64,000 nt of DNA, from contig NEEC01000018.1 of assembly GCA_002189035.1 (NCBI GenBank), positions 1-64,000 on the forward strand, in the 5' to 3' direction. Shown one piece after another: positions 1-63,570 of the stretch. The notes below the pieces were generated by a model. The model ran no database searches and was not told where the DNA came from. It saw only the letters and a list, made by a program, of their open reading frames with translations. The first letter of the stretch is position 1; every line of letters starts with the position of its first letter. The position numbers and the translations under genes were made by a program. The DNA comes from Utricularia gibba. Its lineage: Eukaryota; Plantae; Magnoliophyta.

Positions 1-815
1 GGCCTCGCAAGCTTTACCGTTACCTTCAGGTGTTCTGGACGCCTTAGCGAATGGACTGGACAATGAGACCGTTGGTCTATTATCGCTGCCGTTTAAAAAT
101 ATGAGGATGCGTGGAGATTAGACCAGCACTGATGCGCACGTCCATAGAACCGTAAAGTCCAACCCATGGACTCTTACCTAGTACTTCACCCTTGATGTAT
201 CGTCAAACGATGCGAAAGGGGTACACCAGGAGGAATGACTTGGGTTATAACACTAACAGGATCCCATACATCTTAGTTTTTCCTATTACTTTCCCTTATG
301 ATCTTCCATGGAAACAAAGTAAGACTTACGCAGAGGAGTCACGAGTTCTCTACATGGCGGATCTTGGTGCACCATCGCTACTCGTTTGAGGGTGTTTTGT
401 TGTGCAACAAACTCAGCCAACATCCAATGAATATTAGAATGCGGCCAACGACACTCCATGTACTTTACCGATCACCAACAACGTGCGATGGAAACATTAA
501 CAATTTTGGATTCATTCTATGGAGCAGATACGATGTGGATGTGCTATCCAGCCGTTAGACGGCTACTACCCCGACCTCCTGAATATTTGGACACGAAAGT
601 GGGCATGCCACTATACGTTTGGAAGGAAAAAACCTTCAACCATACAGTTTAAAGGATATCATCTATAACAACATACGTTGCGAGCCACGTAAGCTATTAT
701 TGAGTGGACATCATTTAATGAGAAATGATTTATTGAGTATTGAAGAACATATCGATCGTGGATCCAGAGTGTAACCACTCCTAACCCCAAGTCCATAACT
801 CGACCACTGAGCACT
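1..815. repeat. Repeat A segment (unclassified ~1.5-kb tandem repeat unit, partial)
   Basis: Blocks such as gagattagaccagcactgatgcgcacgtcc, ggaaaaaaccttcaaccatacagttt and gagtcatagagc recur in the same order and orientation at 1084-2959, 7128-8842, 12529-13344 and 17301-18043. Confidence 0.85.
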
Positions 816-1073
816 TGTTAGTGTATGTGCTCTAGAGACAATCAACTCATTGGCAAATCTTATCTTATGATATTTACTTTGAATTGTGATCAAATTTATA
901 TCATTGATAAATCCTCTACTTGATCTATGTGCTATAGAAATTATGATGAGATCATAATGTGAGATTCTTCAAGCACTCATGATCAAGTTAAAAACTCCCT
1001 TGCTAGAGTATTTGTGAAATGAGGATATCACAAATACGGATATGCTGGCACACATTGAGTTCCCTAAACTATT
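816..1073 (+). mobile_element. Truncated 5' end of a family-B (Angela-like copia) LTR
   Basis: Starts TGTTAGTGTATG and matches the start of the solo LTR at 18127. It breaks off after ccctaaactatt. Confidence 0.85.
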
Positions 1074-1083
1074 ACTAAGCTGG

Positions 1084-2959
1084 CATACAGTTTAAAGGAT
1101 ATCATCTATAACAAACATACGTTGCGAGCCACGTAAGCTATTATTGAGTGGACTTTATTTAATGAGAAATGAGTCATAGAGCACTGAAGAACATATCGAT
1201 CGTGGATCCAGAGTGTAATGAATCCTAACGCAAAGTCCATAACTCGACCACGGAGCACTTGTCCTTTGAATCCACACAGCTCACGGAACAAACGAACACT
1301 TCCTCTAATAATCCGACCCTCATGGCATTCACTGGTTATTCAAAACTCCATTCTCTCACTAGGCTTTGCAAAGAAGAGGGTAACGTGGAATGTATCGGTA
1401 TTGCTTAGGAAGTAGGTCACGCCTCGCAACATGCATACTTCATACCTTTCGCATTCCAATGTTTGACCTCCGGATTCCTTTCACTCAAATTGTGGATGAA
1501 GATATAGGAGGGATTACTTGGTTAAGCTGTAGTTAAAGCTGTGTGCGCAACACGCGAGTGTGTTCCGTATGCTAACGGCTTGACCATCATCTGATTGAGC
1601 ATGTTGCTCTTGCACCTTTACGAGTGTCGCCAATTTTCCGTCCTCACTTTCAAACAGGTCCGATGCAACATACAAAGATTAATGGTGGTCGTCTCTTTCA
1701 AGCGTCGACATGATTCCATCGGTTGATGGTCTCTAGTGCAAACTCCCACACTCTTGTAGGCGTTCACATCCGTGCGCACTACTTCCTTTCTTTTCTACAT
1801 TGCTGGACAGATCTCGCTACATTTACAATTAACGAATGAACTGGAGATTGAGACTAGTGGCGTATTGTTGCTGCGATTTAAATACATAGGGATGCATAGA
1901 GATTAGACCAGCACTGATGCGCACGTCCATAGCACCATAAAGTCCATCCAATGGGCTCTAACCAAGTACTTCACCATTCATGTATCTTCAAACGATACCA
2001 GGAGGGTACACCAGGAGCAATGACTTGGGTTATAATAGCACCATAAAGTCCATCCAATGGGCTCTAACCAAGTACTTCACCATTCATGTATCTTCAAACG
2101 ATACCAGGAGGGTGCACTAGGAGCAATGACTTGGGTTATAAGACCAACATGATCCCATACTACTTAGTGTATCCTGTTGCTTTCTCTTATGATGTTCCAT
2201 GGCAATATGGTGAGACGTATGCAGAGGGGTCACGAGTTCACTCCAAGGCGAATCATGGTGCACCATCGTTACTCGTTTGAAGGTGTTGTGTGGTGCAACA
2301 AAGTCAGCCTAATTCCAATGAATAGTAGATTGTGGCCAAGGAGACTCCATGTACTTTATCGATCTCCAACAACGTACGATGGAAACATTAACAATTTTGG
2401 ATTCATTCTATAGAGCACATACGATGTGGATGTGTTATCCAGCCTTTAGATGACTCCCACCCTGACCTCTTGAATGTTTGGACACGAAAGTGGCATGCCA
2501 CTATACGTTTGGGAGGAAAAAACCTTCAACCATACAGTTTAAAGGATATCATCTATATCAAACATACGTTGAGCCACGAAAGCTATTGTTGAGTGGACAT
2601 CATTTAATGAGAAATGAGTCATAGAGCATTGAAGAACATATCGATCGTGGATCCAGAGTGTAACCACTCCTAACCCCAAGTCCATAACTCCAGTGCCTAA
2701 CCTCCAAATGTCTTTTACTCTGAATTCACATGAAGATATAGTAGAGATCACTTGGTTATGCAATAGGTAAAGCCGTGTGCGCAACATGCGAGTGTGTCCT
2801 ATATCCTAATGCCTTGACCATCATCTGATTGAGACTGCTGCTTGTGCACCTTTACTAGTGTGTCCACTTTTCCATCCTCTCTTCAAACAGGTGCAATGCA
2901 ATATATAAAGAACAATGGGTGGTCGTCTTCTTTTATTCTTCGACACCAATCTATCATTG
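1084..2959. repeat. Repeat A segment, more than one contiguous head-to-tail unit
   Basis: The block catacagtttaaaggatatc occurs at ~1084 and again at ~2531 with continuous repeat-A sequence between. It contains a ~106-bp tandem duplication (1931-2036/2037-2142) and internal deletions. Confidence 0.85.
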
Positions 2960-5900
2960 CGATATGACCCTTCAATCAACAAGTGATTGGCAAACCAGTT
3001 ATTGGTTTAAAAGAAGCAATCCCTCACAGAAAAGAAGTTGGCCCTTAAGGATTGAAAGATCCTTGCAACCCAAACTATGAAATGGTATCACACTCACAGA
3101 ATCAAGGAAGGAATTGGGAGTGATAAACCACACACTAGACACCACAAGCAAGGCTTGATAAATCTAAGTTCTACAAGAACTCAAGAAAGGAGAATTGCTC
3201 TCAAATGTGATTACAATCAAAGTTGTCCAAAACAAGAGTAAGGCCCTTCTTATATAGACGAAGGGTTTGGCCTTATTGGAAGAAAAGTAGTAATAATAAT
3301 GCATTTGGTAGTAATGGGCCTTCTCTAATCCAGTTGATCCACTATGACAAGGTTGAATTCCAGGCCAAACACCTCATTGCTTGATTGATTGGCCCATAAG
3401 CTCTTAAGCACTTCTTGAGTTCACTCTTTTCACATGACTGATTCTTGCAACAAGGCTCTCCACTTCTTTTTTCCTCACAACTCCTTCATTCACGTCTTTC
3501 TTTTCACTCTCTTTTTTAGATGTTCTTTTCCTTTCTCGTGATATCTCTTTTTTCTCCCCCATACTCTCATCCCTCAACTCACCAAAAGATTTGATAGCGG
3601 TAGCAATCTTAACTTGATCTTCGTGTGCCTCTTTTGGAGATAAAGGCACCAACGTGATGGGTTTTCCTTTAATGGAAAAGGAATACTTGTTTTATAGCCA
3701 TCATGGTGTTTGAGAAAGTGAGTACTCTCCATAAACTGAGGGACGTGGGCCACTATTCCTTCCTATGCACATGGTGTCAAAGAAGAGTAGAGTAGTGAGC
3801 CCACCTCCCACATTTCTCTCAACTACTTGCAGTTATTTCCACTCCACTTTTGGGAGTTGTTAGTGAGTCGTGGATGCATCTTTCTCGCATCTAGTTAGGC
3901 TAATTTCTAGTATAAATCTCGAAGTCTTGTATTCAGTCTTTACTCAATATTATTGATCCGGTTTTTCAGGTTATCCCTGCTTCAATTTTGCTTCTTCATC
4001 GTCGTCCTCGTGTAGTTTCTGTTCCAGAATCAATTTGCATCACTTCACTCCAACACATGGATCACCTTACTATCATATTGCCAAGGCCTTCCCAAGAGTA
4101 TGTGTCCAGCATGCATGGGAACTACATCACAAAGAACCTCATCCTGATACTTTCCAATTTGGAAAGCAACAAGAACTTGTTTATTGACCTTTACTTCACT
4201 CCCTTCGTTCAACCATTGAAGCCTGTAGGGATTTGGATGTTTGAGAGTAGGAAGTTGGAGTTTATCCACCATGAGAGTACTAGCAACATTTGTGCAACTA
4301 CCTCCATCGATTATTAGGCTACATACCTTCCCATGTGCAAAGCAACGTGTATGGCATAAGTTTTCGCGTTGCTCCTCCATTGGCTTAGCATCCATGACTG
4401 AAGTCCTTCTTGTTACCAAACTTTTACCAATAACAGGTTGTTGTTCCCCATCATATATCTCATGTAAAGCACTTCCACTTTCACTCTCAACTTCAGATTC
4501 AACATCTCCATAATCCCTTAGAACCATGGTCCTCTTGTTTGGGCATTCTGAAGCAATATGACCATGGCCGAGACATTTGAAGTATTTGATATTTTTTGTT
4601 TGCCCAGAAAACTTAAATCCTCTTTCCTTGTGTCGAGTATTTGAAGTGCCCTCTTTCATCGATTCTAACTTGGTTGATTTCCCAAATGAAGGATAATTTG
4701 GTTTCTTCTCCTTACTTCCAGCAACATTCCACGAAGTAGAAGGTTTTGGATGGTCTCTTTGTTGTCCCTTAGACTTTAGTTGCTTCTCAATCTTGATGGC
4801 AACGTGCAACATGTCTTCAATCTCTACATAGTGTTGCAGCTCGACCACTTGAGAAATTTCCTTGTTTAAGCCATAGAGGAATCTTGCCATTGTAGCTTCC
4901 CTATCCTCTGTTATGTTGGCTCGAATCATTAATACCTCCATTCTTGCCCATATTCTTCCACGGTTTTGCTCCCTTGGGTGAGTTTCTGCAAGTTTTGGTG
5001 TTGATCTCTTTGGTAGTGGTTGGGAATGAACCTTTTTCTCATGATCCTCTTCATTTCAGTCCAAGTGCGATTTGGTTCTTCATCATTTCGTCTTCTGTTG
5101 AGTACTATGTTATCCCACCAAGTTATGGCATAATCTATAAACTCAACAACAGCAAGCTTGATCTTCTTGGCTTCAAAATAGTTGTGACAATCAAACACAT
5201 GCTCCACACGAGTCTCCCACTCCAAGTAGGCATTTGGATCGTTTTTCCCTTGAAAAGGAAAGATTTTCAAATTCCTTGTATTCACTTGTGTATCTACCCT
5301 TGGTCTTTCATCATGTCCTGCATCACGATTTGGCCTCCTATTTCTTTGATATCTTCGTTCTATATCATCACCACCAGATGAATCATACTTATCAAAGATG
5401 TTGTTATTATTTCTCCTTTGTTCACCATGCCTTGCCTCTTAGGCCTCAGATTCCGAATCTTTTTCTAGTTGAGAATTCCTTCTACTATGGTGTGATGGAA
5501 CTCTTGTTCTTCCATGGGAGACACTATCCTCTTCTTGCTTTTTGATGTTCTTGAGAGATTCATCATGTTCCTTTAATTTGATGTGGATTTGCTCCATGCA
5601 GCTTTGCAGTCTTCTTAACTCACCTTGCATTGCATTAAGTACGAACAACCATCCATTGCACCTGATTCTTCTGCAGGGTTGTTAGAGCTCGACATCCTAC
5701 TACAAGTTAAAAGTGTAGACAAAAGGAAGGAAAGAGAACAATGAAAGAAAGATAGAAGTAAAAGAAGAAGGAGAGAATTTTCAAACCTCAAGTCCTCTTG
5801 AACTTTAAGACTCAATAAACCTTAAATGATCAATCTAAGTGTGGTTCAAAGAGATAACAGTGGCTAGGGTAATGAGTGGGATAAAGAAAATGAGCAATAT

Positions 5901-6980
5901 AGGACTTGGTGATGGTAACAGTACTTATGAATAAGTAAGAGTAGGAATAGAAGGATAGAGTGTAACTTGTTGTGATTAACACACAAGAGGTAGGTAGATA
6001 ATTGAAAAGAGTCAAAATGGAATATAAGTGTGACAATAGACAAAGTTGTGCAATATTGACTTTTCTTTTATTTGGTAAGTAGAAGATTCAATGGATTCAA
6101 ATGACTAGCTCCTTTTTTTTTACTTTTCTTGTGTGTGAAAAGTTGAAAATTCAATGAATTCAGGTGCTAACCTTCTTTTTCCCTTCAACACATTTTTTTT
6201 TTCTTTTTGCAGCAATCCAGAAGAAAAGGATGAAAGAAACAAAGATAAGAAACCCCCTTGGTTTTTCTTTTCAGAAGAAAAGATGAGCAAAAGACAAGAT
6301 AAGCAAATAAGGATAAATCTGGACTAGTTTCTGGTTTTTTTTTTCTTTAGAACGAAACCACAACAAGATAGATAGGAGATGAAGAAGAGAAACATTGGCT
6401 CTGATACCACCTGATACGACCCTCCAATCAACAAGTGATTGGCAACCAAATCTTGGTTGAAAAGAAGCAATCTCTCAAGGAAAAGAAGTTGGCCCTCAAG
6501 GATTGAAAGATCCTTGCAACCCAAACTATGAAATGATACCACACTCACATAATCAAGTAAGGAATTGGGAGCAATAAACCACACACTAGACACCACAAGC
6601 AAGGCTTGATAAGTCTAAGTTCTACAAGAACACAAGAAAGGAGAATTGCTCTCAAATATGATTACAATCAAAGTTGTCCAAAACAAGACTAAGACCCTTC
6701 TTATATAGATGAAGGATTGGGTCTTATTGGAAGAAAAGGAGTAATAACAATGCATTTGGTAGTAATGGGTCTTCTCTAATCCAGTTGATCCACTATGACA
6801 AGGTTGAATTCCAGGGCAAACACCTCATTGCTTGATTGATTGGCCCATAAGCTCTTAAGCACTTCTTGATTATTTCTTGCTCTTGATCTAGGGATTGGCG
6901 CAACTGAAATCAATGGAGGATTATTGATCTTGTGTCATTTGTCTTCATTGGGATGATCTGTAGCATCAATGATCTCATCA
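2960..6980 (-). mobile_element. CRM-clade Ty3/gypsy element (family E), internally deleted: 5' LTR 6412-6980, PBS 6398-6409, degenerate gag-protease ~3420-5700, truncated 3' LTR 2960-~3418
   Basis: Two similar LTR copies. gctctgatacca is the reverse complement of the tRNA-iMet PBS TGGTATCAGAGC. The gag reads KIFPFQGKNDPNAYLEWE..WWD, with a CxxCxxxGHxxxxC knuckle remnant ([14 protein letters not shown]) and the protease motif LIIDGGS. RT, RH and INT are absent. Confidence 0.9.
3707..4055. mobile_element. 349-bp solo LTR inserted in the CRM protease region
   Basis: TGTT...AACA termini and a perfect 5-bp TSD CATGG (3702-3706, 4056-4060). Removing it rejoins the peptide DSKVIH|DGYK. Confidence 0.85.
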
Positions 6981-7120
6981 TCCCCCCCTCCTTCTTTTAG
7001 CAGATTCATCCTTGAATCGTCACCATCTACATCTCAAGTAACCAAGTCAGCCATATTGAATGTAGAGTGCACCGAAAACTCACCTAAAAGATTAATCTTA
7101 TAAGCATTGTCATTGATTTT
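6981..7120 (-). mobile_element. PPT and integrase C-terminus of a second, upstream CRM family-E unit sharing the LTR at 6412-6980
   Basis: Minus strand reads NDNAYKINL..EFSVHSTFN.ADLV, then the purine tract aaaagaaggaggggggga, then the TGATGAG LTR start. Homologous to 14854-14990. Confidence 0.8.
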
Positions 7121-7127
7121 GTCATTG

Positions 7128-8118
7128 GACTTCTTCACAAATGGACTGGAGAAAGATACCGATGCCTATTGTTGCTGTGATTTGAATATATGGGGATGCA
7201 TGGAGATTAGACCAGCACTGATGCGCACGTCCATAGCACCATAAAGTCCATCCCATAACCTCTAACCAAGTACTTCACCATTCATGTATCGTCAAACGAT
7301 ACAAAGGGGGTACACTAGGAGATTGAACTTGGGTCATAACACCAACAGGATCCCATACTTCTTAGTGTATCCTGTTGCTTTCTCTTATGATGTTCCATGG
7401 CAACATGGTGAGACGTACGCAGAGGAGTCACGAGTTCACTTCGTATACCTCGCACAGCTCCCACACCCCACATTCGTTTTGTTACATAGTAAAGCACTAC
7501 CTCACCATAATTTATTGGTATCGCTTAGGCAGTTGATCACGCCTTGCGAAATGCATACTTCATACCCCTCACCATGAGGATAGAGAGATCACTTGGTTAA
7601 GCAATTGGAAAAGCCGTGTGCACAAAACGTGAGTGTGTCCCGTATCCTAATGCCTTGACCTATATCTGATTGAGCGTTTTGCTAGTGCATCTTTACTAGT
7701 GTGGCCACTTTTCCATCCTGTCTACCAGTGCGATGCAATGTACAAAGTATAATGGGTGGTCGTCTTCTTTCAAGCATAGACACCAGTCTATCAGTGGCTG
7801 GTCTCTATTGTCAAACTCCCATGCTCTTGTAGGCGTTGACATCCATGCGCACTACCTCCTCTCTTTTCTCCATTGCTGGACAGTTCTCACTAGCTTTACC
7901 ATTATGTGGTGGTGTTTCGGACTTCTTAACGAATGGACTGGAGAATGAGACCAGTGGCCTATTGTTGCTCCCGTTTAAATACATGGGGATGTGTGGAGAT
8001 TAGACAAGCACTGATGTGCAAGTCCAAAGCACCATAAAGTCCATCCCATGGCCTCTAAACAAGTACTTCACCATTCATGTATCGTCAAACGATACCAAGG
8101 GGGTACGCCTTGAGCAAT
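7128..8118. repeat. Repeat A segment with an internal deletion near 7440
   Basis: Same blocks and orientation as the other repeat A copies. Confidence 0.85.
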
Positions 8119-8712
8119 TGATGAGCCCGAGAAGTGTATTTAAAGAATGATGAGAAGTTTGTCCAAGTGAACACATTAGATACAAAGATGATTCCACCAG
8201 GACCAATGACTAGAAGCAAGAGCAAAATGCTTGAAGATACACTTAAGGCTCTACTCAATACAATTGGAATCAAACATGGGCTTGAAGACATCCCATCAAA
8301 AGAGCTCAACTACTTGAAGGTGGATTTACCTTAGAGCAATGGACTTGTTAGACTTTTCTATTTCATTTAGTTTGGGCCAAGTAATGTTAGAGCCCAATCC
8401 TAGAGTATAAATACTCTAGAGATATACTCTTTCAGGACCTTTAGTCATTTCATGTATGTTGTGAGGATTCTCCTCTTCTTTGAATGCTTGAACACTCTTA
8501 ACTTATCAAGCTTTGAGCTTGTGGTGTTCTAGGATTATCTCTTCCAATCCCTCTCTCTTTTCTGAAGTGTGGCTCCTAATTTTCTTTGTTTCGAAGTCTG
8601 GTTGCAAGAGATTCATTCTCTTGTGGGTAGACTTGGGTGGGTTCTCTTCTAAGCTTCAAAATCACCTCTTGTTCGTGGGTTACTAATCTCTATAGATTAG
8701 AGGGTCACATCA
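8119..8712 (+). mobile_element. Solo LTR of CRM family D (594 bp) inserted in repeat A
   Basis: TGATGAG...CACATCA, highly similar to the 5' LTR at 57420-58022. Flanks GCAAT/GCAAC (4/5 TSD). Repeat A resumes at 8713. Confidence 0.9.
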
Positions 8713-8842
8713 GCAACGACATGGTTTATAACACCCAAAGGATCCCATAGTACTTGGTGTATCCTATTGCTTTCTCTCGTGATGTTCCATGGTATCATTG
8801 TGAAACGTGCACAAAGGATTCACGAGTTCACTCTATGGTGGT
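8713..8842. repeat. Repeat A segment (continuation after the solo LTR)
   Basis: gcaacgacatggtttataac...cacgagttcactc matches the repeat A block at 12821-12945. Confidence 0.8.
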
Positions 8843-11800
8843 TCTTGTTCATTCTATAGGTCATCACAAACTGTGAATAGCTATCAGGTAGTGAGGTAAG
8901 GATCAAGTCAATATTCATGTCCTTATCCAACACAAAACCAAGAGATGACAACTTTTCAATGTAACTCAACATCAATGTTGCATGATCAGCAGCAGAATTT
9001 CCTTCTGCCAAGCGACAATTGAACAACAGCTTTGATGTCGTGAATCTTTCAAGTCGTGAGTGCTCGCCAAACAGATTCTTGAGGTGTGTTATCATCTGTG
9101 GGCAAGTCATCGACTCACGCTGTTTTTGGAGATCAGGGGCCATCTAAGCAAGCATGATACAGCAGATAAGCTCAGCATCATCTAGATACTTCTGATATGC
9201 ATGCCGAACATCTTCAGCTGCATTAGCCCTGGGTTGTGCAGGAACATCTTGCTCAAGGATGTAAGCAATCTTCTCCGCCTTGAGAACAATTCTCAGATTG
9301 CGGTGCCAATCAGTAAAATTCGAGCCAACCAACTTGTTGGACTCTATAATGGATCTCAAATTCACGCCAGAAGACATATCTTCAACTTGAAGAAGAGAAA
9401 GCAAACACATCATGTAGTGTTCCTTAAATCACATGCAACTTGTCTTTATCAAATGTGATATACTTCCACTAGGTTTTTCGAGATGGCAGTCCCCTACTGA
9501 CAAAACGAGAAAATCACATTTTCTTAATGGGACAGTGTCCCATTTCATTCATCTCCACCTTGACTGTAGCCAAAAAGCTTTAATGAATGAAACAGGTAGT
9601 CATCTCATGCCAATTGTATCTCTCATACAACCATTGTATCATTGAGCCATCAACTCTTGATGTAAAAAACTATTTACCTCAACCTTTCTTCCAATTTTGC
9701 CAACCTTGGCTTTAGTCTGAATCTAATTCAGTTAATAAGTTGATAAAATCAGTTAAGAAAACCCACTCTGAATCTAATTCAATAATTCAAACATGTCATG
9801 TGTAGTGGAGAGCTTGACGGTAGCCAACAACTCTATGCACTAAAAATGTCTTTCGTTCTCCTTATGTCAGTGGAAGGAATAAGCTTAATTATTTAGTAGG
9901 GGATTTTTCCATAGGCAACACTTGCACCATGGATATCGATATCCTATCACATAGGAATCATGACATCCATTGCCCTTTCGTGCATAACGCATCATATCCC
10001 TTTATTTTCACACATAATGAACGAAAATCCTAATTGACCCTAGATGCCTTGGTCACAAATAAATTATTAAACATCATATGCATCAATAATTCACCAATAT
10101 GATCATCATCATCCAAATTCGTGCAGAGGCCATCATGCCCCACGACTACACACATATAAGTCATCATCATGCTGCGCATTTAGATGTAAGATATAATTCT
10201 CGAAAGCATCAATCACGAATGAAATTTCGTGCATCCTAAGGCAGCAAAACAATCCAACATAATCAGATTTCGTGCATCACATGCTATTATGATGATCGCC
10301 GGCAAGGCTACATACGACAACATCTCGCAATCACATGCTATAACAATAATCGCTAGCAAGGCAACATACGAGAGCATCTCGCAAATCAGCAAAGATTTTA
10401 ACGTATCACTGGCAAGGCAACATACTAGAACATCTCGCAAAATCAAAAAAGATTCTAGCGTATACAAGTATTCCGTAAGCTGGCTCCGATACCACTTTTG
10501 GGTTTCTCGTAGACATCATATGTCATGAAAGCAGCGGAATTTTCAAAATTTTAAGAAACGCCAATCGTAGATCTTGGAATACGGTATACATCAGAAAAAG
10601 GGATGCTGAAATTACCTTTCAAAGGACTCCGTTGTTCACCAACCCCCAATAGCAGACGGTCTCTATGGTATCCACACATGGAGCGCTCCATCGATAACCT
10701 TCTCAAGACTATTGAATGCTGGTCGAATTCCTCAGGTGCTAGTCGAGCAAAACGGCCCCTTGTGGATCAATCTCAGAGAGCACGAAGACCTAGAAGCTAA
10801 TCTGTAGATTTAAATCTTTTGATAGATATTTGGTAACATATAAAATCAAATCTCCGTAAAGATCTCATCTTCTGGAGATATATATATGTTCCAAATCTTA
10901 TCTATATGAGATCTTTTACTTTGAGTTTAATCAATATTAATCTCAAAATAACTCTCTAATTAATCCACTTTACCAATTACATCTCATGTAATTGTGTCAT
11001 TCTATTTTATATCGTTGAGTGACTCCACTATTGTGTGTGACCCTATAGGCTTCTTCAATCAAGGCCATAATAATGGATTTATTAATTAACTCTTAATTAA
11101 TCAAATCCATCATTATCGATCATGAGTGATGTCTAGCAACATATCATGATCCTCTAGATGTAAGAATAATCAGGTGAACTGATTGAGCCTTTCCATGACC
11201 AGCCACCATGCAATGAACAGCTTTCATCATACTTATATCTCATTCGATACTAGAATATGGGTGTGTGTCTTTCTGATGTATCGAATTTATAATTGCATTC
11301 AAGCACTAACACTCAATGACCTACTCAAAAATTTCGAGTGTCGTTATCTTGGGCCCAGGACTTACTGTTAGGCTTTGATGCAATTACTTGAGATATGATC
11401 TCATCGCTAACATGAGTGATGAATCCTTTATTGATCAATCAACAATCTCCAACCTTAAGGAGTCACATCCCTACTCATCCATATTAGGCAAGCCAAGGTT
11501 AGGCTCCCATTAGTAATGAGCGAAAATGTGAGCTTAAGACCAAGATAACTTTGTTGACCTCAAGTCTAAGCTTAATTGCACGGCTGTCATATTCGAGATC
11601 TTGCTACTTACATTTGGTTAGCTTCCCATAATAGTATCTCGAAGATGAGTGATTGTGTGAATCGATTCTGTAATTGACACCCACACATAGGTTCTAGTAA
11701 TCTCATTGCATCAATTGTGTGAACCATTGCCTAAATAGTTTAGGGAACTCAATGTGTGCCAACTTATCCGTATTTGTGATATCCTCATTTCACAAATACT

Positions 11801-11850
11801 CTAGTCAGGGAGTTTTTTAGCTTGAACATAAATGCTTGTCACTAAAATAA
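8843..11850 (-). mobile_element. Angela-like Ty1/copia 5' half: truncated 5' LTR (family B, 10496-~11850), PBS 10483-10494, gag ~9380-8843 with an internal stop
   Basis: The gag peptide NLRSIIESNKLVGSNFTDWHRNLRIVL...ERFTTSKLLFNCRLAEG..LILTSLPDSYSQFVM is typical copia gag (UBN2-type). PBS gctccgatacca is adjacent to the LTR end. The Angela assignment rests on LTR size (~1.5 kb), PPT and gag style. Confidence 0.8.
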
Positions 11851-12346
11851 GCAAGTGGACGTCCATTTTGCATCAATACAGCACCAATGCCTAAACCTGA
11901 TGCATCACATTCAATTTCAAAAGTGCTAGGAGAGGTGTTGAGCAAAGCTTATCCTTGAGTTGCAGGAAGGCATGTTCCTGCTCGTCTCCCCAATGAAATG
12001 GGTAATTTTTCTTGATCAATTGAGTGAGGGGTGCTGCTATAGAGCTGAAATTCTTAACAAACCGTCTATAGAAACTCGCTAAGCCATCGAAACTCCTAAC
12101 TTCACCAACTGATGTAGGTGTTGGTCATTCCCTAATTGCTCACTTTCTCTTCATCCACATCTACTCCTGCATCACTTACAACATGTTCAAGAAAAGAGAC
12201 ACAATTCGTGCAAAAGACACACTTCTTGATGTTAGCAAACAAATTCTCTTTTCGAAGAGTATCTAACACATCCTTCAAATGCCCTCCATGTTCCTCAAGT
12301 CCCTTGCTATAGATTAGAATATAATCAAAATAAACAACTACGAATC
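11851..12346 (-). mobile_element. Ty3/gypsy (CRM-like) RT/RNase H fragment
   Basis: Minus strand reads [41 protein letters not shown] and [25 protein letters not shown], closely parallel to the RT at 61.4-61.9 kb. Confidence 0.85.
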
Positions 12347-12528
12347 TATTGGTGTATGTGTTATAGAGACAATCAATTCATTGGCAAATCTTATCCTTTG
12401 ATGTTTACCTTGAATTGTGATCAAGTTTACATCACTGATAAAATCCTCTACTTGATCTACGTGCTATAGAAATTATGATGAGATCATAATGTGAGATTCT
12501 TCAAGGACTTATGCTCAAGTTCAAAAAC
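12347..12528 (+). mobile_element. Family-B LTR 5' fragment
   Basis: Matches the first ~180 bp of the LTR at 18127. Confidence 0.8.
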
Positions 12529-13344
12529 TGCCATGCTTTTCTACGCATTAACATCCATGCGCACCTCCTCTCTTCTCTCCACTGCTGGACAGATCTCGCT
12601 AGCTTTACTGTTATGTGGAAGTGTTTCGGACTTCTTAACGATTGGACAGGTGAATGAGATCGGTTGCCTATTGTTGCTCCCGTTTAAATACATGAGGATG
12701 TGTGGAGATTAGACAAGCACTGATGTGCAAGTCCAAAGCACCATAAAGTCCATCCCATGGCCTCTAAACAAGTACTTCACCATTCATGTATCGTCAAACG
12801 ATACCAAGGGGTACACCTTGAGCAACGACATGGGTTATAACAGTAACAAGATCCCACACTGCTTAGTGTATCTTGTTGCTTTCTCTCGTGATGTTCCATG
12901 GTATCATGGTGAGACGTTCGAAGAGGAGTTACAAGTTCACTCCATGGTGGATCATGGTGCACCATTGTGACTTTTTTGAGGGTGTTATGTGGTGCAACAA
13001 ACTCAGCCAACAACTAATGAATATTACAATGTGACCATGGAGCCTCCATGTACTTTACCAACCTCCAACAACGTGCGATGGAAACATTAAAAATGTTGAA
13101 TTCATTCTATGGAGCAGGTACGGTGTGGATGTGCTATCCAGCCTTTAGATGACTCCCATCCTGATCTCCAGAATGTTTGGATACAAAAATGAGCATGGTA
13201 CCATACGTTTGGGAGGAAAAAAACTTCAACCATGCAGTTTACAAGATACCATCCTTAACAAAAATACGTTGCGAGCCACGTAAGCTATTATTGTGTGGAC
13301 ATGATTCAATGAGAAGTGAGTCATAGAGCGCTGAAGAACATATT
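12529..13344. repeat. Repeat A segment
   Basis: Collinear with 1-760 and 1760-2640. Confidence 0.85.
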
Positions 13345-13761
13345 TGATACGACCCTCCAATTAACAAGTGATTGGCAAACCATATCTTGGTTAAAAAGAA
13401 GCAATCCCTCACGTAAAAGAAGCTGGCCCTCAAGGATTGAAAGATCCTTGCAACCTAAACTATAAAATGGTACCACACTCACAGAATCAAAGAAGGAATT
13501 GGGAGTGATAAACCACACACTAGACACCACAAGCAAGGCTTGATAAGTCTAAGTTCTACAAGAACTCAAGGAAGGAGAATTGCTCTCAAAAGTGATTACC
13601 ATCAAAGTTGTTCTAAACAAGAGTAAGGCCCTTCTTATATAGATGTAGGATTGGGCCTTCTTAGAAGAAAAGTAGTAATAATAATGTATATGGGCATAAT
13701 GGGCCTTCTCTAATCAAGTTGATCCACTTTGAGAAGGTTGAATTCTATGCCAAACATCTCA

Positions 13762-14697
13762 GGTCGCGATTGGTTGCTTGGTTTAGGTGGGTTGCGGTGT
13801 GGGTTAAAGGATAAACCCGCATTTGATACGTGGGTTTCAGGCAGGAAAAAATAAACCCGCTTGCTGCCCATAAACCCGGCAGGAACCCGCCAAGCTGGGT
13901 TTAGCTAAACCCAGGGGGGGAGGGGGTCAACTTAGCTAAACCCAGCTCGGCGCTTCCAATTTTGCCTTCACGTGAACCACATTTGAACGCAAATCTATCA
14001 TAAACCAGATGAACAAATTTGAAGCTGATTTATTCAGATCTGTAACAATTTTTTTCAGATTTGTAACAGATTTGTTTAGATCTGTTCAAATCTGTTGGAG
14101 AAGAAGAAGAAGAAAAGGAAGAAGAAGAAGAAGAAAAGTAAGAAGAAGTGGAAGAAGAAGAAGAAGAAGAAGAAGAAGAAGAAAATAAAGAAGAAAAAGA
14201 TAAAGAGAAAGAAAGATGAAAGTACTAACATGTCTAATATTGTAGGTTTTCATTTTTGGTGCTAAATGTGATTTGTCGTTTTGAAGACGAGCACTACGTC
14301 TATTATTATCCGGTGCTTGTTGTAAAATGTAAATTTTTCGTTTTGAAGATGTGCACCGCCTCTATTATTACTCAGTGCTTGTTATAAAATATAGTTTCAA
14401 CTAAGCACCATGATTTATGCTATGCGGTCCTCAATTGAACTTATAAAATGATATAGAAAAATTAAATATGTGATAATTTACTTTAATTAACTAAAGGCTA
14501 TATTGGTAATTTCATATAAAAATCATCACAAACCCAATTTTATACCCACGTGCCAAACGTGTATTAGTTTTAAACCCAAATAATCTACACCCATCAACTA
14601 AACACGAATTGAACCCTTTAAACCCATAAAACCAGGTTATCAAAACCCAAATAAACTAAACTTGGGTTTAGGCCAAACCCAGCAACCAAATGTGCCC
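13762..14697. mobile_element. Tourist/PIF-type MITE (936 bp) inside the CRM LTR
   Basis: Imperfect TIRs GGTCGCGATTGGTTGCTTGG / GGGCACATTTGGTTGCTGGG (15/20). 3-bp TSD TCA (13759-13761, 14698-14700). The LTR sequence rejoins across it. No ORF. Confidence 0.8.
14099..14220 (+). repeat. Imperfect (GAA)n microsatellite within the MITE
   Basis: Visible gaagaagaa runs. Confidence 0.9.
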
Positions 14698-16127
14698 TCA
14701 TATCTTTGTTGATTGGCCCATAGGCCCTTAAGCATCTCTTGATTCTTTCTTGCTATTGATCTAATGATTGGCCCAACTGAAATAAATAGAGTATTATTGA
14801 TCTTGTGTTCTTTATCTTCATTGGGATAATCTCTTGCATCCATGATCTCATCATCCCCCTCTTCTTTTAGAAGATTCATCCTTGAATCATCACCATCTAC
14901 ATCACAAGGAACCAAGTCAGCAATATTGAACGTAGAGTGCACTGAAAACTCACTTGGAAGACCAATCTTATAAGCATTGTCATTGATTTTTCTCAATGAC
15001 TTGAAATGGTCCATCTCCTCTTGGTGAAAGCTTTGAATGTCTCTTGCTTGGAAATCTTTCCTTTCGAAAATGTACCCAAACCCAATCTCCTAGTTGTAGA
15101 GTAACTCTCTTCCTATGTTTATTTTCTTTAGCTGCATACTCCTTGTTTTTGGCTTCCAATTGATTTCGAACCTTCTCATGTAGTGTTTTGATGGCATCTG
15201 CTCTCTTAGCACCATCAAAACTACGAAATTCATATATGTCAAGGGCAATAAGTCTATAGGAGCATGAGGATTAAAACCATACACAATTTCAAAGAAGAAC
15301 AACATGTAGAAGAATGTACTGCTCTATTATATACAAACTCAACATGAGGTAAGCAATCTTCCCATGTTCTAATGTTCCTTTTGATGATGGCTCGAAGTAA
15401 GGTAGCTAGGGTTCGGTTTGTTACCTCGATTTTTCCATCAGTTTGGGGATGACAAGTAGTAGAGAAAAGAAGTTTTGTTTCCAACTTACTCCAAAGTGTG
15501 TGCTAAAAGTGGGTGAGAAACTGTGTCACGATCACTTACAATGGTAAGTGGCATGCCATGAAGTCTAACAATCTCCTTAAAGAATAAATTGGCAACATGT
15601 CAAGCATCATCAGTCTTGTGACAAGGGATGAAATGTGCCATCTTGGAGAACCAGTCCACGACTACAAATATTGAATCCTTTACCTTTTGAGTCCTTGGTA
15701 ATCCTAAAACAAAATCCATAAAAAGGTCAATCCAAGGGTAAAGAGGAGTAGGAAGAGGAGTGTACAATCCTTAAGAAGTTGATTTTGATTTGGCTTTCTT
15801 GCACACCAAACATCTTCCACAGATTCTTTCCACATCTTTTCTCATGTGTGGCCAATAGAAGTGTTGTTGAAGCATGTCCAACGTCTTGTGACCCCAAAAT
15901 GCCCCATTAGACCACCACTATGAGCCTCTTTCACTAAAAACTCACGAATTGAACATTGAGGAATGCATAATCTATTCTTCTTGAAAAGGAAATCATCTTG
16001 CCTATGGAAGTTTCAAGAGGTTTATGTTCACATGAAAGATAAATATCTTTAAAATCATGTTCAAGACTGTAAAATTCTTTTATCGTTGTCAATCCAAGAA
16101 TTTGAGCATCAAGAGTAGCTTATTTTT

Positions 16128-16800
16128 AAGGAGTCACATCCCTACTCATCCATACTAGGCAAGCCATGGTTAGGCTCCCATTATTAATGAGCGAAAATGT
16201 GAGCTTAAGATCAAGATAACTTTGTTAACATCAAGTCTAAGATTACTTGCACGGCTGTCATAATCGAGATCTTGCTACTGACACTTGGTTAGCTTCTCAT
16301 AGTAGTATCTCGAAGATGAGTCATCTAGTGAATCGATTCTCTAATCGACACCCACACATAGGTTCTAGTAATCTCATTACGTCAATTGTGAGAACCATTG
16401 CCTAAACAGTTTAGGGAACTCAATGTGTGCCAACTTATCCGTATTTGTGATATCCTCATTTCACAAATACTCTAGCCAGGGAGTTTTAACTTGATCATGA
16501 GTGCTTGAAGAATCTCACATTATGATCTCATCATAATTTCTATAGCACATAGATCAAGTAGAGGATTTTAACAATGATATAAATTTGATCACAATTCAAA
16601 GTAAATATCAAAAGATAACATTTTCCAATGAGTTGATTGTCTCTAGAACACATACACTAACAATCTCCCACTTGCATTAGAGCGAATCATTGATGTATCT
16701 TATACCAATGGACTCTATGTACTCCATTGACGTCCTAGTTCCATTGTGAATGGGTAGTCTTGCTTAAAACTTTTCTAAGTGACTGCACCTCCATTTAGGG
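16128..16800 (-). mobile_element. Angela-like copia 3' end: RNase H end, PPT, and partial 3' LTR (family B, 16128-16662)
   Basis: Minus strand ..ESIGIRYINDSL* is followed by caagtgggagat and TGTTAGTGTATG. Confidence 0.8.
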
Positions 16801-16914
16801 TGAATAATTATCTTGATTGAGACGTCAAGTCAAATGAGATCGGAAATATATTATCCCATTTGGAGATCTTGACTACCATAAATCAGGAAAATGACTTTAG
16901 TCCTTCTCAAGTAC

Positions 16915-17300
16915 TAACACTAGCAAGGAAGAACATTAATCTCATGACTATGAAGACTTTCTCAAGTTGGGAGATCTCGGTCTGGGGAGGGGGGGGGGTG
17001 GAGTGTTGGAGATCCGCCTCAATACAAAGGATGAAGTTGATTGGAAGCACTAATCTTGTGTCATAAAGTCATGTTTTAGTTAAAAAGTGTTGCATTCGAG
17101 TTGTTGGGCTTTTTTGTGTTTTTAATGATTGTGACCCACTGTTGGGTAACCTAGGTATTGGGCATATATAAACCCTACTAGGAACATGCGTGAATCAGGT
17201 TTTCGGTCATTCTTATTGTTCATGAGTTCTTCATCATCCAAAGTGATCTCATATGAATTATCCCTTTGTTCCATCCCAAGACTCTATCTTTCTAGCATCA
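16915..17300 (+). mobile_element. Copia family C 3' end with G-rich PPT and ~297-bp LTR (17004-17300)
   Basis: TGTTGG...CATCA. Inverted homolog at 18044-18126 plus 19627-19930. Confidence 0.7.
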
Positions 17301-18043
17301 ATAGTAGGTATGGTGTGGATGTGCTATTTAGCCTTTAGATGACTCCCACCCTGATCTGCAAAATTTTCGAACACTTAAGTGGGCATGCGACTATAAGTTT
17401 GAGAGGAAAAAACCTTCAACCATGCAGTTTAGAGGATACCTTCCTAAACCAAAATACGTTGCGAGCCATGTAACCGATTATTGTGTTGACATCATTCACC
17501 GAGAAGTGAGTCATAGAGCATTGAAGAATATATCGATTGTGCATCTAGAGTGTCACGAATCCTAACCCCAAGCTCATAACTCGACCACTGACCACTTGTC
17601 CTTCGAATCATTGTGGCTCATGGATTAGATGGGCACTTTCCCTTACGAATTCGACCCTGATGGCATCGACTCCTGATGCATAACTCGATTTTCGCACTCG
17701 GCTTTGCAAAGAAGAGGGTAGCGTTCCTCGTAATCCATCCTGCTCAACCTCCAAACCTTTTCCTTCAAACGAGTCTACAAATACCCCGCATAGCTCCCAC
17801 ACCCCACATTCGTTTCGTTATATTGGAAAGCACAACTTGACCCTTAGGTATTGGTATTGTGTAGCAATTAGATCACGCCTTGCAACATGCATACTACATC
17901 ACTTGTGCCACTCCAATTGCTGTCCTTAGGATGCCTTTTACTCCGACAGTACACAAAGATAGAGACATCATTTTGGTAAGCAAAAGCTAAAGCCATGTGC
18001 ACTACACGCTAGTTTCCCACGTAGCCTAATGCCTTGACCATAT
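17301..18043. repeat. Repeat A segment
   Basis: Collinear with 530-815 and 1260-1586. It supplies the block deleted in other copies. Confidence 0.85.
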
Positions 18044-20245
18044 TGATGCAAGAAAGACAGAATCTTGGGAAGGAACAAAGCGATAATGCTTATAAGATCA
18101 CGTTGATGAAAAATGACTCATAAATGTGTTAGTGTATGTCTTCTAGAGACAATCAACTCATTGGCAAATCTTATCTTTTGATATTTACTTTGAATAATGA
18201 TCAAATTTATATCATTGATAAAATCCTCTACTTGATCTATGTGTTATAGAAATTATGATGAGATCACAATGTGAGATTCTTCAAGCACTCATGATCAAGT
18301 TAAAAACTCCCTAGCTAGAGTATTTGTGAAATGAGGATATCACAAATACGGATAAGCTGGCACACATTGAGTTCCCTAAATTGTTTAGGCAATGGTTCTC
18401 ACAATTGATGTAATGAGATTACTAGAACCTATGAGTGGGTGATGATTAGAGAATCGATTCATTGGATGACTCATCTTCGAGATGCTACTATGGGATGCTA
18501 ACAAAGTGTCAGTAGCAAGATCTCGAATATGGCAGCCGTGCAAGTAAGCTTAGACTTGAGGTCAACAAAGTTATCTTGATCTTAAACTCACATTTTCGCT
18601 CATTACTAATGGGAGCCTAACCATTGCTTGCCTAGTATGGATGAGTAGGGATGTGACTCCACAAGGTTGGAGATACTTGATTGATCAATAAAGGATTCAT
18701 CACTCATGTTAGCGATGAGATCATATCTCAAGTAATTGCATCAAAGCCTAACAGTAAGTCCTGGGCCCAGGGTAATGACACTCGAATTGTTTGAATAGGT
18801 CATTGAGTGTTAGTGCTTGAATGCAATTATAAATTCGATACATCAGAAAGACACACACCCATGTTCTGGTATCGAATGAGATATAAGTATGATGAAAGCT
18901 GTTCATTGCATGGTGGCTGGTCATGGAAAGGCTCAATCAGTTCACTTGATTATTCTTACATCTTGGGGATCATGATATATTGCTAGACATCACTCATGAT
19001 CGATAATGATGGATTTGATTAATTAAGAGATAATTAATAGATCCATTATTACGGCCTTAATTGAAGAAGCCTATAGGGTCACACACAATAGTGGAGTCAC
19101 TCAACGATATAAAATAGAATGACACAATTACATGAGATGTAATTTGTAAAGTTTATAAATTTAATTGAGAGTTATTTTGAGATTAATATTGATTAAACTC
19201 AAAATAAAACATCATATATAGATAAGATTTGGAACATATAGATATCTCCACAAGATAAGTTCTTTACGAAGATATGATTTGATATGCTACCATATATCTA
19301 CTAAAAGATTTAGATCTTGAGACATGCTCCATGGGTCTTCGTGCTCTCTAAGACTAATCCACAAGGGGGCGTTTTTCTCTACTAGCACCTGAGGAATTCA
19401 ACCAGCATTCAATAGCCTTGAGAAGGTTATCGACGGAGTGCTCCACGTGTGAATACCATAGAGGCCGTCTCCTATTGGCGGTTGGTGAACAACGGAGTCA
19501 TCTGAAAGGTATTTCAGCATCCCTTAGTCTGATGTATACGTATTCCAAGATCTGGGTTGGGGGTTTCTCAAAATTTTTAAAATTCGACTACTTTTGAGAC
19601 ATACGATGTCTACGAGAAACCCAACAAAATTATAAGAATGACTGAAAATCTAAATCACATGAGTTCCTAGTAGGGTATAAATATACTCGATACCTTGGTT
19701 ACCCAAAAATGGGTCATAATCAATAAAAAAAATAAAAAGCCCAACAACTCGAATTTCAAAACTTTTGAACTAGAACTTGACTTCATGACACAAGCTTAGT
19801 GCTTCCAATCACCTTCAACCTTTGGATTAAGGCTGATCGCCAACACTCCGCCCCACGACCGAGATCTCCCATCTCTAGAAAGTCTTCATAGTCATGAGAT
19901 TAATGTTCTTCCTTGCTAGCTCAAACTGAACTCTGTTGAAACCTATGATGAGCTCATCAGCAAGTTTATTCCCACACTCAACATACTGCATTTTGATCTT
20001 CTTCTCCTTGATGTAATTCCTTGTGACATGATACCTGATTCTTATGTGTTTGGCTTTGCTGAAGTTTGTTGGATCCTTGGCAATTGAGATTGCAGCTCAA
20101 TTGTCCATAAGCAGATATGAAGCTTCCTTCTGAATGAATCCAAGTTCGTTTAACATCTGTCTCAACCAATCGCAATAGTTCAAAGCATGTGCTGCAAAGA
20201 TGTATTTTGTTTCAGCTATTGATTGTGCTACCACTTGGTCAAACA
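18044..20245 (-). mobile_element. Copia family C RNase H, PPT and 3' LTR, interrupted by a family-B solo LTR
   Basis: RH-like peptide VVAQSIAETKY..LMDN*AAISIAKDP..KAKHIRIRYH. LTR C sequence is contiguous on both sides of 18127-19626. Confidence 0.75.
18127..19626 (+). mobile_element. Family-B solo LTR (1500 bp)
   Basis: TGTTAG...CCCAACA, flanks AAATG/AAATT. Confidence 0.9.
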
Positions 20246-21394: not shown

Positions 21395-22847
21395 TGTTGG
21401 GTTTCTCGTAGACATCGTATGTCTCAAAAGCAGAGGAATTTTAAAAATTTTGAGAAACCACCAACGCAGATTTTGGAATACGGTATACATCATACATAGG
21501 GATGTTCAAAGTACCCTTCAAATGACTCCGTTGTTCACCAACCGCCAATAGAAGACGGCCTCTATGGTATCCACACGTGGAGCACTTCGTCGATAACCTT
21601 CTCAAGGCTCTTGAATGCTGGTCGAATTTCTCACGTGCTAGTAGAGAAAAACGCCTCCTTGTGGATTAGTCTCAGAGAGCACGAAGACCTTTGGAGCAGA
21701 TCTCAAGATCTAAATCTTTTTTATAGATATTTTGTAACATATCAAATCATATCTATATGAGATCTTTTATTTTGAGTTTAATCAATATTAATCTCAAAAT
21801 AACTCTCAATTAAATTTATAAACTTTACAAATTACATCTCATGTAATTGTGTCATTCTATTTTATATCGTTGAGTGACTCCACTATTGTGTGTGACCCTA
21901 TAGGCTTCTTCAATTAAGGCCGTAATAATGGATCTATTAATTATCTCTTAATTAATCAAATCCATCATTATCGATCATGAGTGATGTCTAGCAATATATC
22001 ATGATCCCCAAGATGTAAGAATAATCAAGTGAACTGATTGAGCCTTTCCATGACCAGCCACCATGCAATGAACAGCTTTCATCATACTTATATCTCATTC
22101 GATACCAGAACATGGGTGTGTGTCTTTCTGATGTATCGAATTTATAATTGCATTCAAGCACTAACACTCAATGACCTATTCAAACAATTCGAGTGTCATT
22201 ACCCTGGGCCCAGGACTTACTGTTAGGCTTTGATGCAATTACTTGAGATATGATCTCATCGCTAACATGAGTGATGAATCCTTTATTGATCAATCAAGTA
22301 TCTCCAACCTTGTGGAGTCACATCCCTACTCATCCATACTAGGCAAGCAATGGTTAGGCTCCCATTAGTAATGAGCGAAAATGTGAGTTTAAGATCAAGA
22401 TAACTTTGTTGACCTCAAGTCTAAGCTTACTTGCACGGCTGCCATATTCGAGATCTTGCTACTGACACTTTGTTAGCATCCCATAGTAGCATCTCGAAGA
22501 TGAGTCATCCAATGAATCGATTCTCTAATCATCACCCACTCATAGGTTCTAGTAATCTCATTACATCAATTGTGAGAACCATTGCCTAAACAATTTAGGG
22601 AACTCAATGTGTGCCAGCTTATCCGTATTTGTGATATCCTCATTTCACAAATACTCTAGCTAGGGAGTTTTTAACTTGATCATGAGTGCTTGAAGAATCT
22701 CACATTGTGATCTCATCATAATTTCTATAACACATAGATCAAGTAGAGGATTTTATCAATGATATAAATTTGATCATTATTCAAAGTAAATATCAAAAGA
22801 TAAGATTTGCCAATGAGTTGATTGTCTCTAGAAGACATACACTAACA
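21395..22847 (-). mobile_element. Family-B LTR, inverted relative to 18127-19626, preceded by a duplicated ~75-bp LTR terminus (21320-21394)
   Basis: Plus strand TGTTGGG...CTAACA. Flanks CGCAC/CCACC do not form a TSD. Confidence 0.9.
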
Positions 22848-23557
22848 CCACCAACATCTGTATGCACAAGTTGTAGTTTTTCCTTTGCTACTAAATCATT
22901 GGAATAAAGTGGCTTTCTACATTGTTTACCTTAATAGCCAACTTCACATATGGCATCAGCAAACTTGATATCTTTTAATTCTAGTACATCGTTATTCTTC
23001 TACAATATTTTCACATTGTTGAAGCTATAGTGCCCAAAACGTTTGTGCTAAAGGCTGCTTTGATTCTTCTACAATTATGATCACTGACCATGATGTGGTC
23101 AACACAGCATGGAACTCAATCTTCCATGAAAAATACTCGAGAGGTTTTACCTCCCTATTTAGGATTTTGGGTTTAGTATTATCTTGTGTAAAATTCAAGC
23201 AAGAAGGTAAAACATGTCGACTTTTCTTGAAACACACATCCAAGTACTACCCTTGCCCATGATGTCCCCGACTTTGGAATTTTTTTGACATTCTGAGGAT
23301 AAGGCTTTGTACAATGTTGCCTGATTTTAAGGGTAATGAAATGACAATACGCCACAATTTGCAATGGGGAAATAGTATGTTCTTATCCATGTGCATCCAC
23401 ACAATGCATAGCATGCCATTTTGAAATGCATTTTGAGCATGAAGCAAAGTACTTGGGCTTAATTCCTTTTTTAGAAGTTTTAGTTGTCAGAAAGCTTTTG
23501 CAATGACATCACTCTTAAAAGTGATTCCATCATCCATACGAACAAAATTGTTATTTT
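22848..23557 (-). mobile_element. Degenerate copia pol fragment (protease to integrase start)
   Basis: Minus strand reads NFVRMDDGITF and ..ICEVGY*GKQCRK..KEKLQLVHTDVGG, cut by the LTR at 22847. Confidence 0.65.
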
Positions 23558-46797: not shown

Positions 46798-46890
46798 TGT
46801 CCTTGGCAGACGATGGGAAGAAGATGGATGAAGGTTGCTAGATTCCTCCGGTTTAAATAACGAAATGAGGAGCGGTGGTAATGAACTTGA

Positions 46891-46900
46891 CTATAAATAG
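46891..46900. promoter_or_regulatory. CTATAAATAG: candidate TATA element and/or C(A/T)8G MADS-type site ~95 bp upstream of the CYP78A ATG
   Basis: Motif match and position only. Confidence 0.3.
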
Positions 46901-50402: not shown

Positions 50403-50449
50403 ATGTTCGATTTGACAGTTAACTATAATTCAGTGTGATTAGTATATAT

Positions 50450-63400: not shown

Positions 63401-63570
63401 GCTGATTTGTCTCCTTTCGAAATGGATACAGATTCAGGGACGAATCTTCCTAAAAAAGGGGGATGATGAGCCCCAGGAAGATAATGAAGTGTATTTAAAG
63501 AATGATGAGGAGTTTGTCCAAGTGAACACATTAGAGACAAAGATGATTCCACCAGGACCAATGACTAGAA
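57420..63570 (+). mobile_element. CRM-clade Ty3/gypsy element (family D): 5' LTR 57420-58022, PBS 58025-58036, gag-pol ~58780-63460 with stops and frameshifts, PPT 63452-63463, truncated 3' LTR 63464-~63570
   Basis: TG...CA LTR and TGGTATCAGAGC PBS. gag [32 protein letters not shown], protease [24 protein letters not shown] zinc finger H..GLMGHFG..C..C. A GPMTRS motif lies inside the LTR. Confidence 0.93.

Follow-up and report, generated by a model that had tools for sequence, protein, structure and literature searches.

A probable remnant of a tandem array with a ~1.46-kb unit, interrupted by CRM-like and Ty1/copia retrotransposons in a plant genome

Centromeric tandem repeats with kilobase-long monomers have been described in several plants. 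In potato and Solanum verrucosum the units measure 1.7-4.1 kb (Gong et al. 2012, as cited in PMC13232507 and PMC7403623), the 1.2-kb AfCen1K of Allium fistulosum is also centromeric (PMC7644871), and the centromeric satellites of Fabeae have monomers of up to 2,979 bp and comprise many species-specific families, some of which are centromeric in only some species (PMC7403623). The repeat that we describe here, located in the first 18 kb of a 64-kb stretch of plant DNA (the window, by which we mean this whole stretch), belongs to a known kind, already represented in Solanum, Allium and Fabeae, in which CRM elements have invaded repeats with kilobase monomers.

As far as the two citing articles describe them, some Solanum repeats likewise have kilobase tandem units with no identifiable domains, and their arrays are likewise disrupted by CRM elements (intact copies in Solanum); those arrays are long, CENH3-bound and often of LTR-retrotransposon ancestry, whereas the array here is short and decayed and revealed no transposable element (TE) ancestry. 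AfCen1K resembles our repeat as a long non-coding monomer with retrotransposon insertions, and the maize CRM-derived repeats as tandem repeats amid centromeric retrotransposons (PMC3648361). However, AfCen1K is high-copy and was mapped by FISH to all centromeres (PMC7644871) and the Fabeae families were defined by CENH3 ChIP (PMC7403623), whereas our repeat is known from the sequence and sequence context of one window; CRM sequence gave rise to the maize repeats, whereas our unit has no similarity to the CRM-like elements of the window. No sequence relation to AfCen1K would be expected because that repeat is from a monocot, and our host represents a different asterid lineage from Solanum, the best matches of a CYP78A-type gene (or pseudogene) ~27 kb from the repeat being in Lamiales (68%). 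Exact-pattern scans of metagenome contigs returned no copies of the unit.

Tandem map of the repeat

Self-BLAST of the window, BLAST against a reference unit (1084-2530) and nhmmer at E<=1 agreed on six repeat segments, all on the + strand and totaling 5.4 kb, with E-values of 1e-12 to 1e-165 and pairwise identities of 71-92%, and all six fit one circular map. Segment A (1-818) covers unit positions ~705-1447 and then 1-179, with 82-92% identity to segments B and E. Segment B (1084-2959) contains the full unit followed by a second one with a ~210-bp deletion. Segment C (7127-8118) joins unit positions 746-1159 to ~306-938 across a ~590-bp deletion, and segment D (8713-8847; unit 1039-1160) resumes segment C exactly on the far side of a solo LTR. 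Segment E (12525-13344) covers 657-1447 and then 1-113, and segment F (17303-18041) comprises 1342-1447, 1-303, ~124 bp absent from the reference unit, and 309-504.

The head-to-tail order is directly visible at two places. In segment B, unit positions 1-162 and 372-640 come back after 1447 bp; in segment C, positions 746-938 come back after only ~792 bp because this copy has the ~590-bp internal deletion. Other segments cross the wrap-around point at 640/641, 13230/13231 and 17420/17421. Because the 1447-bp reference unit carries a private 106-bp duplication (1929-2034/2035-2140) and lacks ~124 bp that segment F has (17724-17848) and segment C has in part (7445-7563), the length of the ancestral unit comes to ~1.46 kb. 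These results agree closely with the original prediction, which had placed the same six same-orientation segments within a few bases of our coordinates, had estimated a unit of about 1.5 kb, and had recognized more than one contiguous unit at 1084-2959.

At least about eight partial units are needed to explain the order in which unit positions occur. Only ~3.7 unit-equivalents are visible, so a long and abundant satellite array is beyond what the window displays. BLAST and nhmmer (E<=1), which would include diverged copies, found no further unit in the other 46 kb (18.1-64 kb); since segment A begins at the window edge, the array may extend upstream.

Ancestry of the unit

Could the unit instead be the internal or LTR part of a TE (LARD- or TRIM-like, a giant LTR element or a Helitron), with the segments as dispersed copies of it? 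The kilobase repeats of Solanum centromeres, in the accounts given by the articles cited above, are TE-derived and some have no recognizable domains, and our ancestry comparison covered the TE families within the window. However, BLAST against the reference unit placed the 12 segment ends at 12 different unit positions, so that the unit has no shared termini, as the circular map also indicates, and all copies lie in one orientation within 18 kb. The unit contained no PBS-like 12-mer (tRNA-Met, <=2 mismatches), no terminal inverted repeats and no protein domain, and BLAST, tblastn and nhmmer detected nothing similar to it among the LTRs and internal TE regions of the window; tblastn of 606 ORF pieces of the window, including its TE ORFs, against the repeat likewise gave no match. 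We consider a TE-derived unit quite improbable, and the data support a genuine ~1.46-kb tandem repeat rather than a dispersed transposon. A dispersed internal TE region was what the original prediction had named as evidence against itself, and its descriptions of the repeat as unclassified and as having no LTR termini, PBS or TIRs held with the methods used here.

Two narrower candidates were also discarded. A TRIM or other LTR-element reading was rejected for want of a PBS and of shared termini, and an RNA-gene origin (rDNA, 5S, tRNA or SINE) was rejected because the unit matched no Rfam family, whether the cutoff was the gathering score or E<=1, and contained no tRNAs.

A fossil protein-coding sequence (a gene, a virus or a captured ORF) amplified in tandem would be consistent with unit positions ~960-1360 being open in 3 of 6 frames in four copies, with the nearly indel-free alignment of the copies over ~500 bp, and with their gene-like GC and CpG content. 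However, substitutions among copies had no three-base periodicity (chi-square P 0.22-0.75), none of the 30 open stretches of >=55 aa in the repeat matched a Pfam family at E<=0.01, a word search of proteins with one unit frame returned nothing, and the presence of overlapping open frames on both strands argues for composition rather than a gene. A profile search of 1.84 billion proteins with a second unit frame gave only six hits, all internally repetitive, unrelated proteins in which short stretches were matched many times over. Two of the six consist of identical copies in tandem, one of these proteins bearing a His tag, and thus look like laboratory concatemers; we judged all six to be spurious. 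With no support from Pfam, periodicity, tblastn, or the word and profile searches, a coding fossil was rejected as extremely unlikely.

Retrotransposons in and beside the repeat

The clearest insertion into the array is a solo CRM-like LTR (8119-8712, +) with TGATG...CATCA ends, which is flanked by a 5-bp target duplication (GCAAT at 8114-8118, GCAAC at 8713-8717) and whose empty site is preserved in the sister segment E, uninterrupted and with a single GCAAC. It is 96.7% identical to the 5' LTR (57442-58022) of a near-intact element of the same family (57420-64000, +), which was inserted outside the repeat and exits the window. That element has an LTR at 57420-58022 with ends matching the solo LTR, a PBS at 58025-58036, a 3' LTR from 63464, and gag-PR-RT-RH-INT plus a PPT. 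In this family the LTR encodes a colinear stretch with GPMTRSKSK, reached in the near-intact copy only after a frameshift, which we take to resemble the CR motif of CRM elements.

The remaining CRM-like copies belong to a second family, with LTRs ending in ...GTATCA. Element X2 (2960-6977, -) has a 3' LTR at 2960-3418 and a 5' LTR at 6412-~6977 (93.5% identical over 458 bp) and retains only gag and protease, RT and integrase having been deleted. Its 5' LTR abuts the integrase end of another element, X3, present as a fragment (6978-7120, -; 6823-7120 matches 14696-14990), in a tandem int-LTR-int-LTR arrangement that is cut at the segment C junction. Element X1 (13345-16114, -), with its 3' LTR from 13345 and a 934-bp insert at 13762-14695, has a pol region 69% identical to the near-intact element and an integrase ORF (14640-15014, -) with an SH3_Tf2-1 domain that continues in frame ~70 codons past the LTR start. 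The 12-mer TGGTATCAGAGC, presumably a match to the 3' end of initiator tRNA-Met, directly follows the 5' LTRs both of the near-intact element (58025-58036, +) and of X2, where it forms the PBS (6398-6409, -). Pfam gave the Ty3/gypsy domain order for the CRM-like elements, with no canonical chromodomain.

Hallmarks of CRM elements are TGATG and (T/C)ATCA LTR termini, a 5-bp target duplication and a tRNA-Met PBS, and in group A, the centromere-targeting group, the polyprotein frame carries on into the 3' LTR, where the CR motif is encoded (PMC3059260). Such LTR ends with a 5-bp duplication, a tRNA-Met PBS and a frame extending into the 3' LTR were all found here, and the inserted elements thus look like group A CRM, an assignment drawn from structural features. 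The three CRM LTR junctions predicted within the repeat (2959/2960, 8118/8119 with 8712/8713, and 13344/13345) proved to be true LTR termini abutting the unit.

A Ty1/copia family with 1.5-kb LTRs (L1500) was also inserted into or beside the repeat several times. The first 258 bp of such an LTR lie at 816-1073 (+; 96% identity to 18127-18380), its 5' terminus at 816 abutting segment A, and a copia remnant occupies 8848-11838 (-), with gag at 8820-9413(-), a 5' LTR at 10493-11838 and the PBS TGGTATCGGAGC at 10483-10494(-).

Of the four CRM target sites visible in the window, three fall within the repeat. The repeat makes up ~11% of the non-CRM DNA, and a post hoc binomial test of this enrichment gives a naive P of ~0.005. 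The original prediction that CRM elements had repeatedly hit the repeat is upheld to that extent, but the repeated copia insertions make the region a general transposon nest, in which targeting specific to CRM is at most a possibility. The same enrichment, together with the group A appearance of the inserts, would fit a locus that is, or recently was, a functional centromere, the 1.46-kb repeat being the long-monomer centromeric satellite of the species or of one chromosome, left as a relic after a centromere shift or array erosion. We regard this as unlikely. The copies are diverged by 8-29% rather than homogenized as in an active centromeric array, and the 71-92% identity between them could be reconciled only with an array that is inactive or a relic; the copia family inserted repeatedly as well; and the gene-like locus is only ~27 kb off, with another CRM copy in non-repeat DNA beyond it.

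History and meaning of the locus

Taking together the directly observed tandem map, insertion termini, single clean target duplication with its paralogous empty site, and CRM hallmarks, we conclude that 1-18,041 is very probably the eroded remnant of one local array of a non-coding ~1.46-kb tandem repeat that was later broken by CRM-like and copia retrotransposons. Such an array could have been born by ordinary tandem duplication, e.g., unequal exchange, after which homogenization would have ceased and the copies drifted 8-29% apart. LTR retrotransposons would then have colonized it, CRM-clade-like chromoviruses inserting three times independently and the Ty1/copia family several times; because the two LTRs of X2 are 93.5% identical as compared to 71-92% for the repeat copies, the array is probably older than the insertions. 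LTR-LTR recombination would subsequently have produced the solo LTR, and illegitimate recombination may have deleted parts of both elements and array, losses that would leave the repeat resuming out of phase at most junctions. Simple insertion accounts for only one of five array breaks, and we infer extra deletions for the others.

The CRM integrases may have been drawn by centromeric or pericentromeric chromatin, in which case the locus would lie in or near (peri)centromeric chromatin now or would have done so at the time of insertion. A stronger version, in which what survives here is the decaying edge, or a relic stranded elsewhere, of a kilobase-monomer centromeric satellite native to this genome, seems doubtful. 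If it were true, a centromere would once have lain within only tens of kilobases of genes, and the gene-like GC and CpG content would hint at birth from unique, non-TE DNA.

Taken alone, the locus is ordinary transposon-riddled plant heterochromatin. If the unit shares a family with long kilobase arrays of the same genome, the window would hold a decayed copy dated by its CRM insertions, which could help trace the rise, movement and death of kilobase-monomer satellites outside Solanum, Allium and legumes.

The composition of the repeat differs from that of its neighbors, with a CpG observed/expected ratio of 0.69 and 44% GC as compared to 0.13-0.52 and 36-40% in the adjacent TEs, and transitions and transversions among copies are about equally frequent. 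Both the mild CpG depletion and this balance of substitutions are unexpected for old, heavily methylated heterochromatin.

Repeat segments and the ancestral unit

Self-comparison of the window, together with BLAST against a reference unit (1084-2530), delimited six repeat segments, all on the + strand and summing to 5,382 bp: A (1-818), B (1084-2959), C (7127-8118), D (8713-8847), E (12525-13343), and F (17303-18041). The originally predicted coordinates were thus right within a few bases. Identity between segments is 71-92%, and nhmmer (E≤1) found no additional copies in the other 46 kb of the window. The head-to-tail arrangement that had been proposed was borne out by recurrence inside B and C and by a single circular map that accommodates every segment. 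In segment B, unit positions 1-162 come again after 1447 bp and are followed by 372-640, revealing a second copy with a ∼210-bp deletion; in segment C, positions 746-938 are present twice, ∼792 bp apart because the copy lost ∼590 bp; and segments A, E, and F cross the wrap-around point without a break. The reference unit carries a private 106-bp duplication and lacks ∼124 bp that F contains, and C in part, which puts the ancestral unit at about 1.46 kb. Judging from the order of unit positions, the array originally had at least about eight partial units; it begins at window position 1 and may extend further upstream.

None of the twelve segment ends shares its unit position with another (one is the window edge, one the arbitrary unit origin, and ten are element junctions), so the repeat has no termini of its own and a dispersed transposon with fixed ends is ruled out. 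Neither terminal inverted repeats nor a tRNA-Met primer-binding site (PBS; ≤2 mismatches) was found in the unit, the repeat gave no Rfam family at the gathering score or at E≤1, no tRNA genes were found, and the unit resembles neither LTRs nor internal regions of the window's elements at the DNA or protein level. In four copies, a stretch of the unit stays open in three frames. Substitutions among copies showed no three-base periodicity, none of 30 open stretches matched Pfam at E≤0.01, and a word search with one frame returned no matches. When 1.84 billion proteins were searched with a profile of another frame, six matches came up, all judged spurious: the proteins are unrelated and internally repetitive, each being matched many times over short stretches, and two of them, built of identical tandem copies (one with a His tag), look like laboratory concatemers. 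On these grounds, an origin as fossil coding sequence is unsupported.

Retrotransposon insertions in the array

The solo LTR at 8119-8712 (+) has TGATG...CATCA ends and GCAAT/GCAAC flanks. Segment D carries on from segment C on the other side of it, and the sister copy in segment E has an uninterrupted site with a single GCAAC; this was a clean insertion, and LTR-LTR recombination came later. The solo LTR and the 5′ LTR of a near-intact element (57420-64000, +) are 96.7% identical. Element X2 (2960-∼6977, −; PBS at 6398-6409, −) retains only gag and protease among its coding remains, and on its right another copy is represented by 143 bp of integrase sequence (6978-7120) that end where segment C begins; with the fragment cut off there, the repeat resumes ∼100 bp out of phase. 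Read in element orientation, 6412-7120 runs from this integrase end straight into the X2 5′ LTR, so that two CRM-like elements stand in a tandem int-LTR-int-LTR arrangement with one LTR in common. Element X1 (13345-16114, −) abuts segment E with its 3′ LTR end. Relative to its relatives, the X1 LTR contains a 934-bp insert (13762-14695), in which a 21-bp repeat and a 62-bp tandem repeat occur besides an (AGA)n microsatellite.

Measured against the list of CRM features in Neumann et al. 2011 (PMC3059260), the inserts appear CRM-like, with the expected terminal motifs, 5-bp duplication, tRNA-Met PBS, and size range. The group A hallmark, a polyprotein frame running on into the 3′ LTR, is present as well (in frame in X1). 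In the family of the solo LTR and the near-intact element, the LTR encodes a colinear stretch with GPMTRSKSK, a putative CR motif. In the near-intact element, a tRNA-Met PBS and gag-PR-RT-RH-INT are followed by a polypurine tract and, at 63464, the 3′ LTR. At 63430-63470 the element's integrase frame ends in the 3′ LTR's first TGA and the LTR-encoded tail lies in the next frame, as if this copy had suffered a single frameshift; the same junction in the related X1 is in frame. The element's 3′ LTR matches the 5′ LTR over the first 113 bp only and diverges completely after 63577. The break immediately follows the codons for GPMTR in the LTR-encoded integrase tail and is probably due to a nested insertion or to a breakpoint within the LTR.

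CRM-like elements are not alone in the array. A Ty1/copia element (gag 8820-9413, −; PBS 10483-10494, −) has a 1.5-kb LTR, L1500, with copies at 816-1073, 10493-11838, 12343-12532, 16126-16662, 18126-19626, 21395-22848, 23557-24040, and 36293-37753. Because an L1500 terminus lies directly against the repeat at 815/816 and segments E and F are flanked by further L1500 fragments, at least two retrotransposon lineages have struck the repeat; the original prediction of repeated CRM hits stands, with copia insertions in addition. Just inside the copia element, beside its PBS, is a 54-56-bp tandem repeat of ∼3 copies (10276-10463).

Age and chromosomal setting

The X2 LTR pair is 93.5% identical, and the 6.5% difference would date the insertion to roughly 2.5 million years at the commonly used rate of 1.3×10−8 substitutions per site per year, which is uncalibrated for the host plant. 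With 8-29% divergence among the repeat copies, the array probably predates the insertions, its homogenisation having already ended. One of the five breaks in the array is a simple insertion, and the other four would require later deletions. Nested transposon clusters commonly show such deletions.

Of the four CRM target sites that the window shows, three are in the repeat, and the repeat accounts for ∼11% of non-CRM DNA (naive binomial P∼0.005, a post hoc value from a small count). This would favor a relic of a true centromeric satellite, a reading we nevertheless regard as unlikely: the copies are strongly diverged, a copia family inserted at the same locus, a CYP78A-type locus is 27 kb away, and one more CRM copy is located in non-repeat DNA. 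From sequence features, we put a position in or near (peri)centromeric heterochromatin at about an even chance, and an active centromere core is very unlikely. Kilobase-monomer centromeric repeats broken up by CRM insertions are known from potato and S. verrucosum; Allium fistulosum has a 1.2-kb centromeric repeat with retrotransposon insertions, and centromeric satellites of Fabeae reach about 3 kb. The present locus is therefore a new but decayed example of an already described type, kilobase-unit repeats with CRM insertions, in a Lamiales-like asterid.

The GC content of the repeat (44%) and its CpG observed/expected ratio (0.69) are near the values of the gene at 45-47 kb, and it is much less CpG-depleted than all its neighbors, the flanking transposable elements having 36-40% GC and ratios of 0.13-0.52. 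Transitions about equal transversions among the copies; this balance and the mild CpG depletion would not be expected of old, heavily methylated heterochromatin. The CYP78A-type P450 locus (44993-46913, −) has its best matches among Lamiales proteins, at only 68% identity, and its first exon is divided over two overlapping frames (45626-46744 and 46479-46913). In AT-rich intergenic DNA at 50448-50963, an 88-bp unit is repeated in tandem ∼5.8 times, the copies matching at 83-86%.
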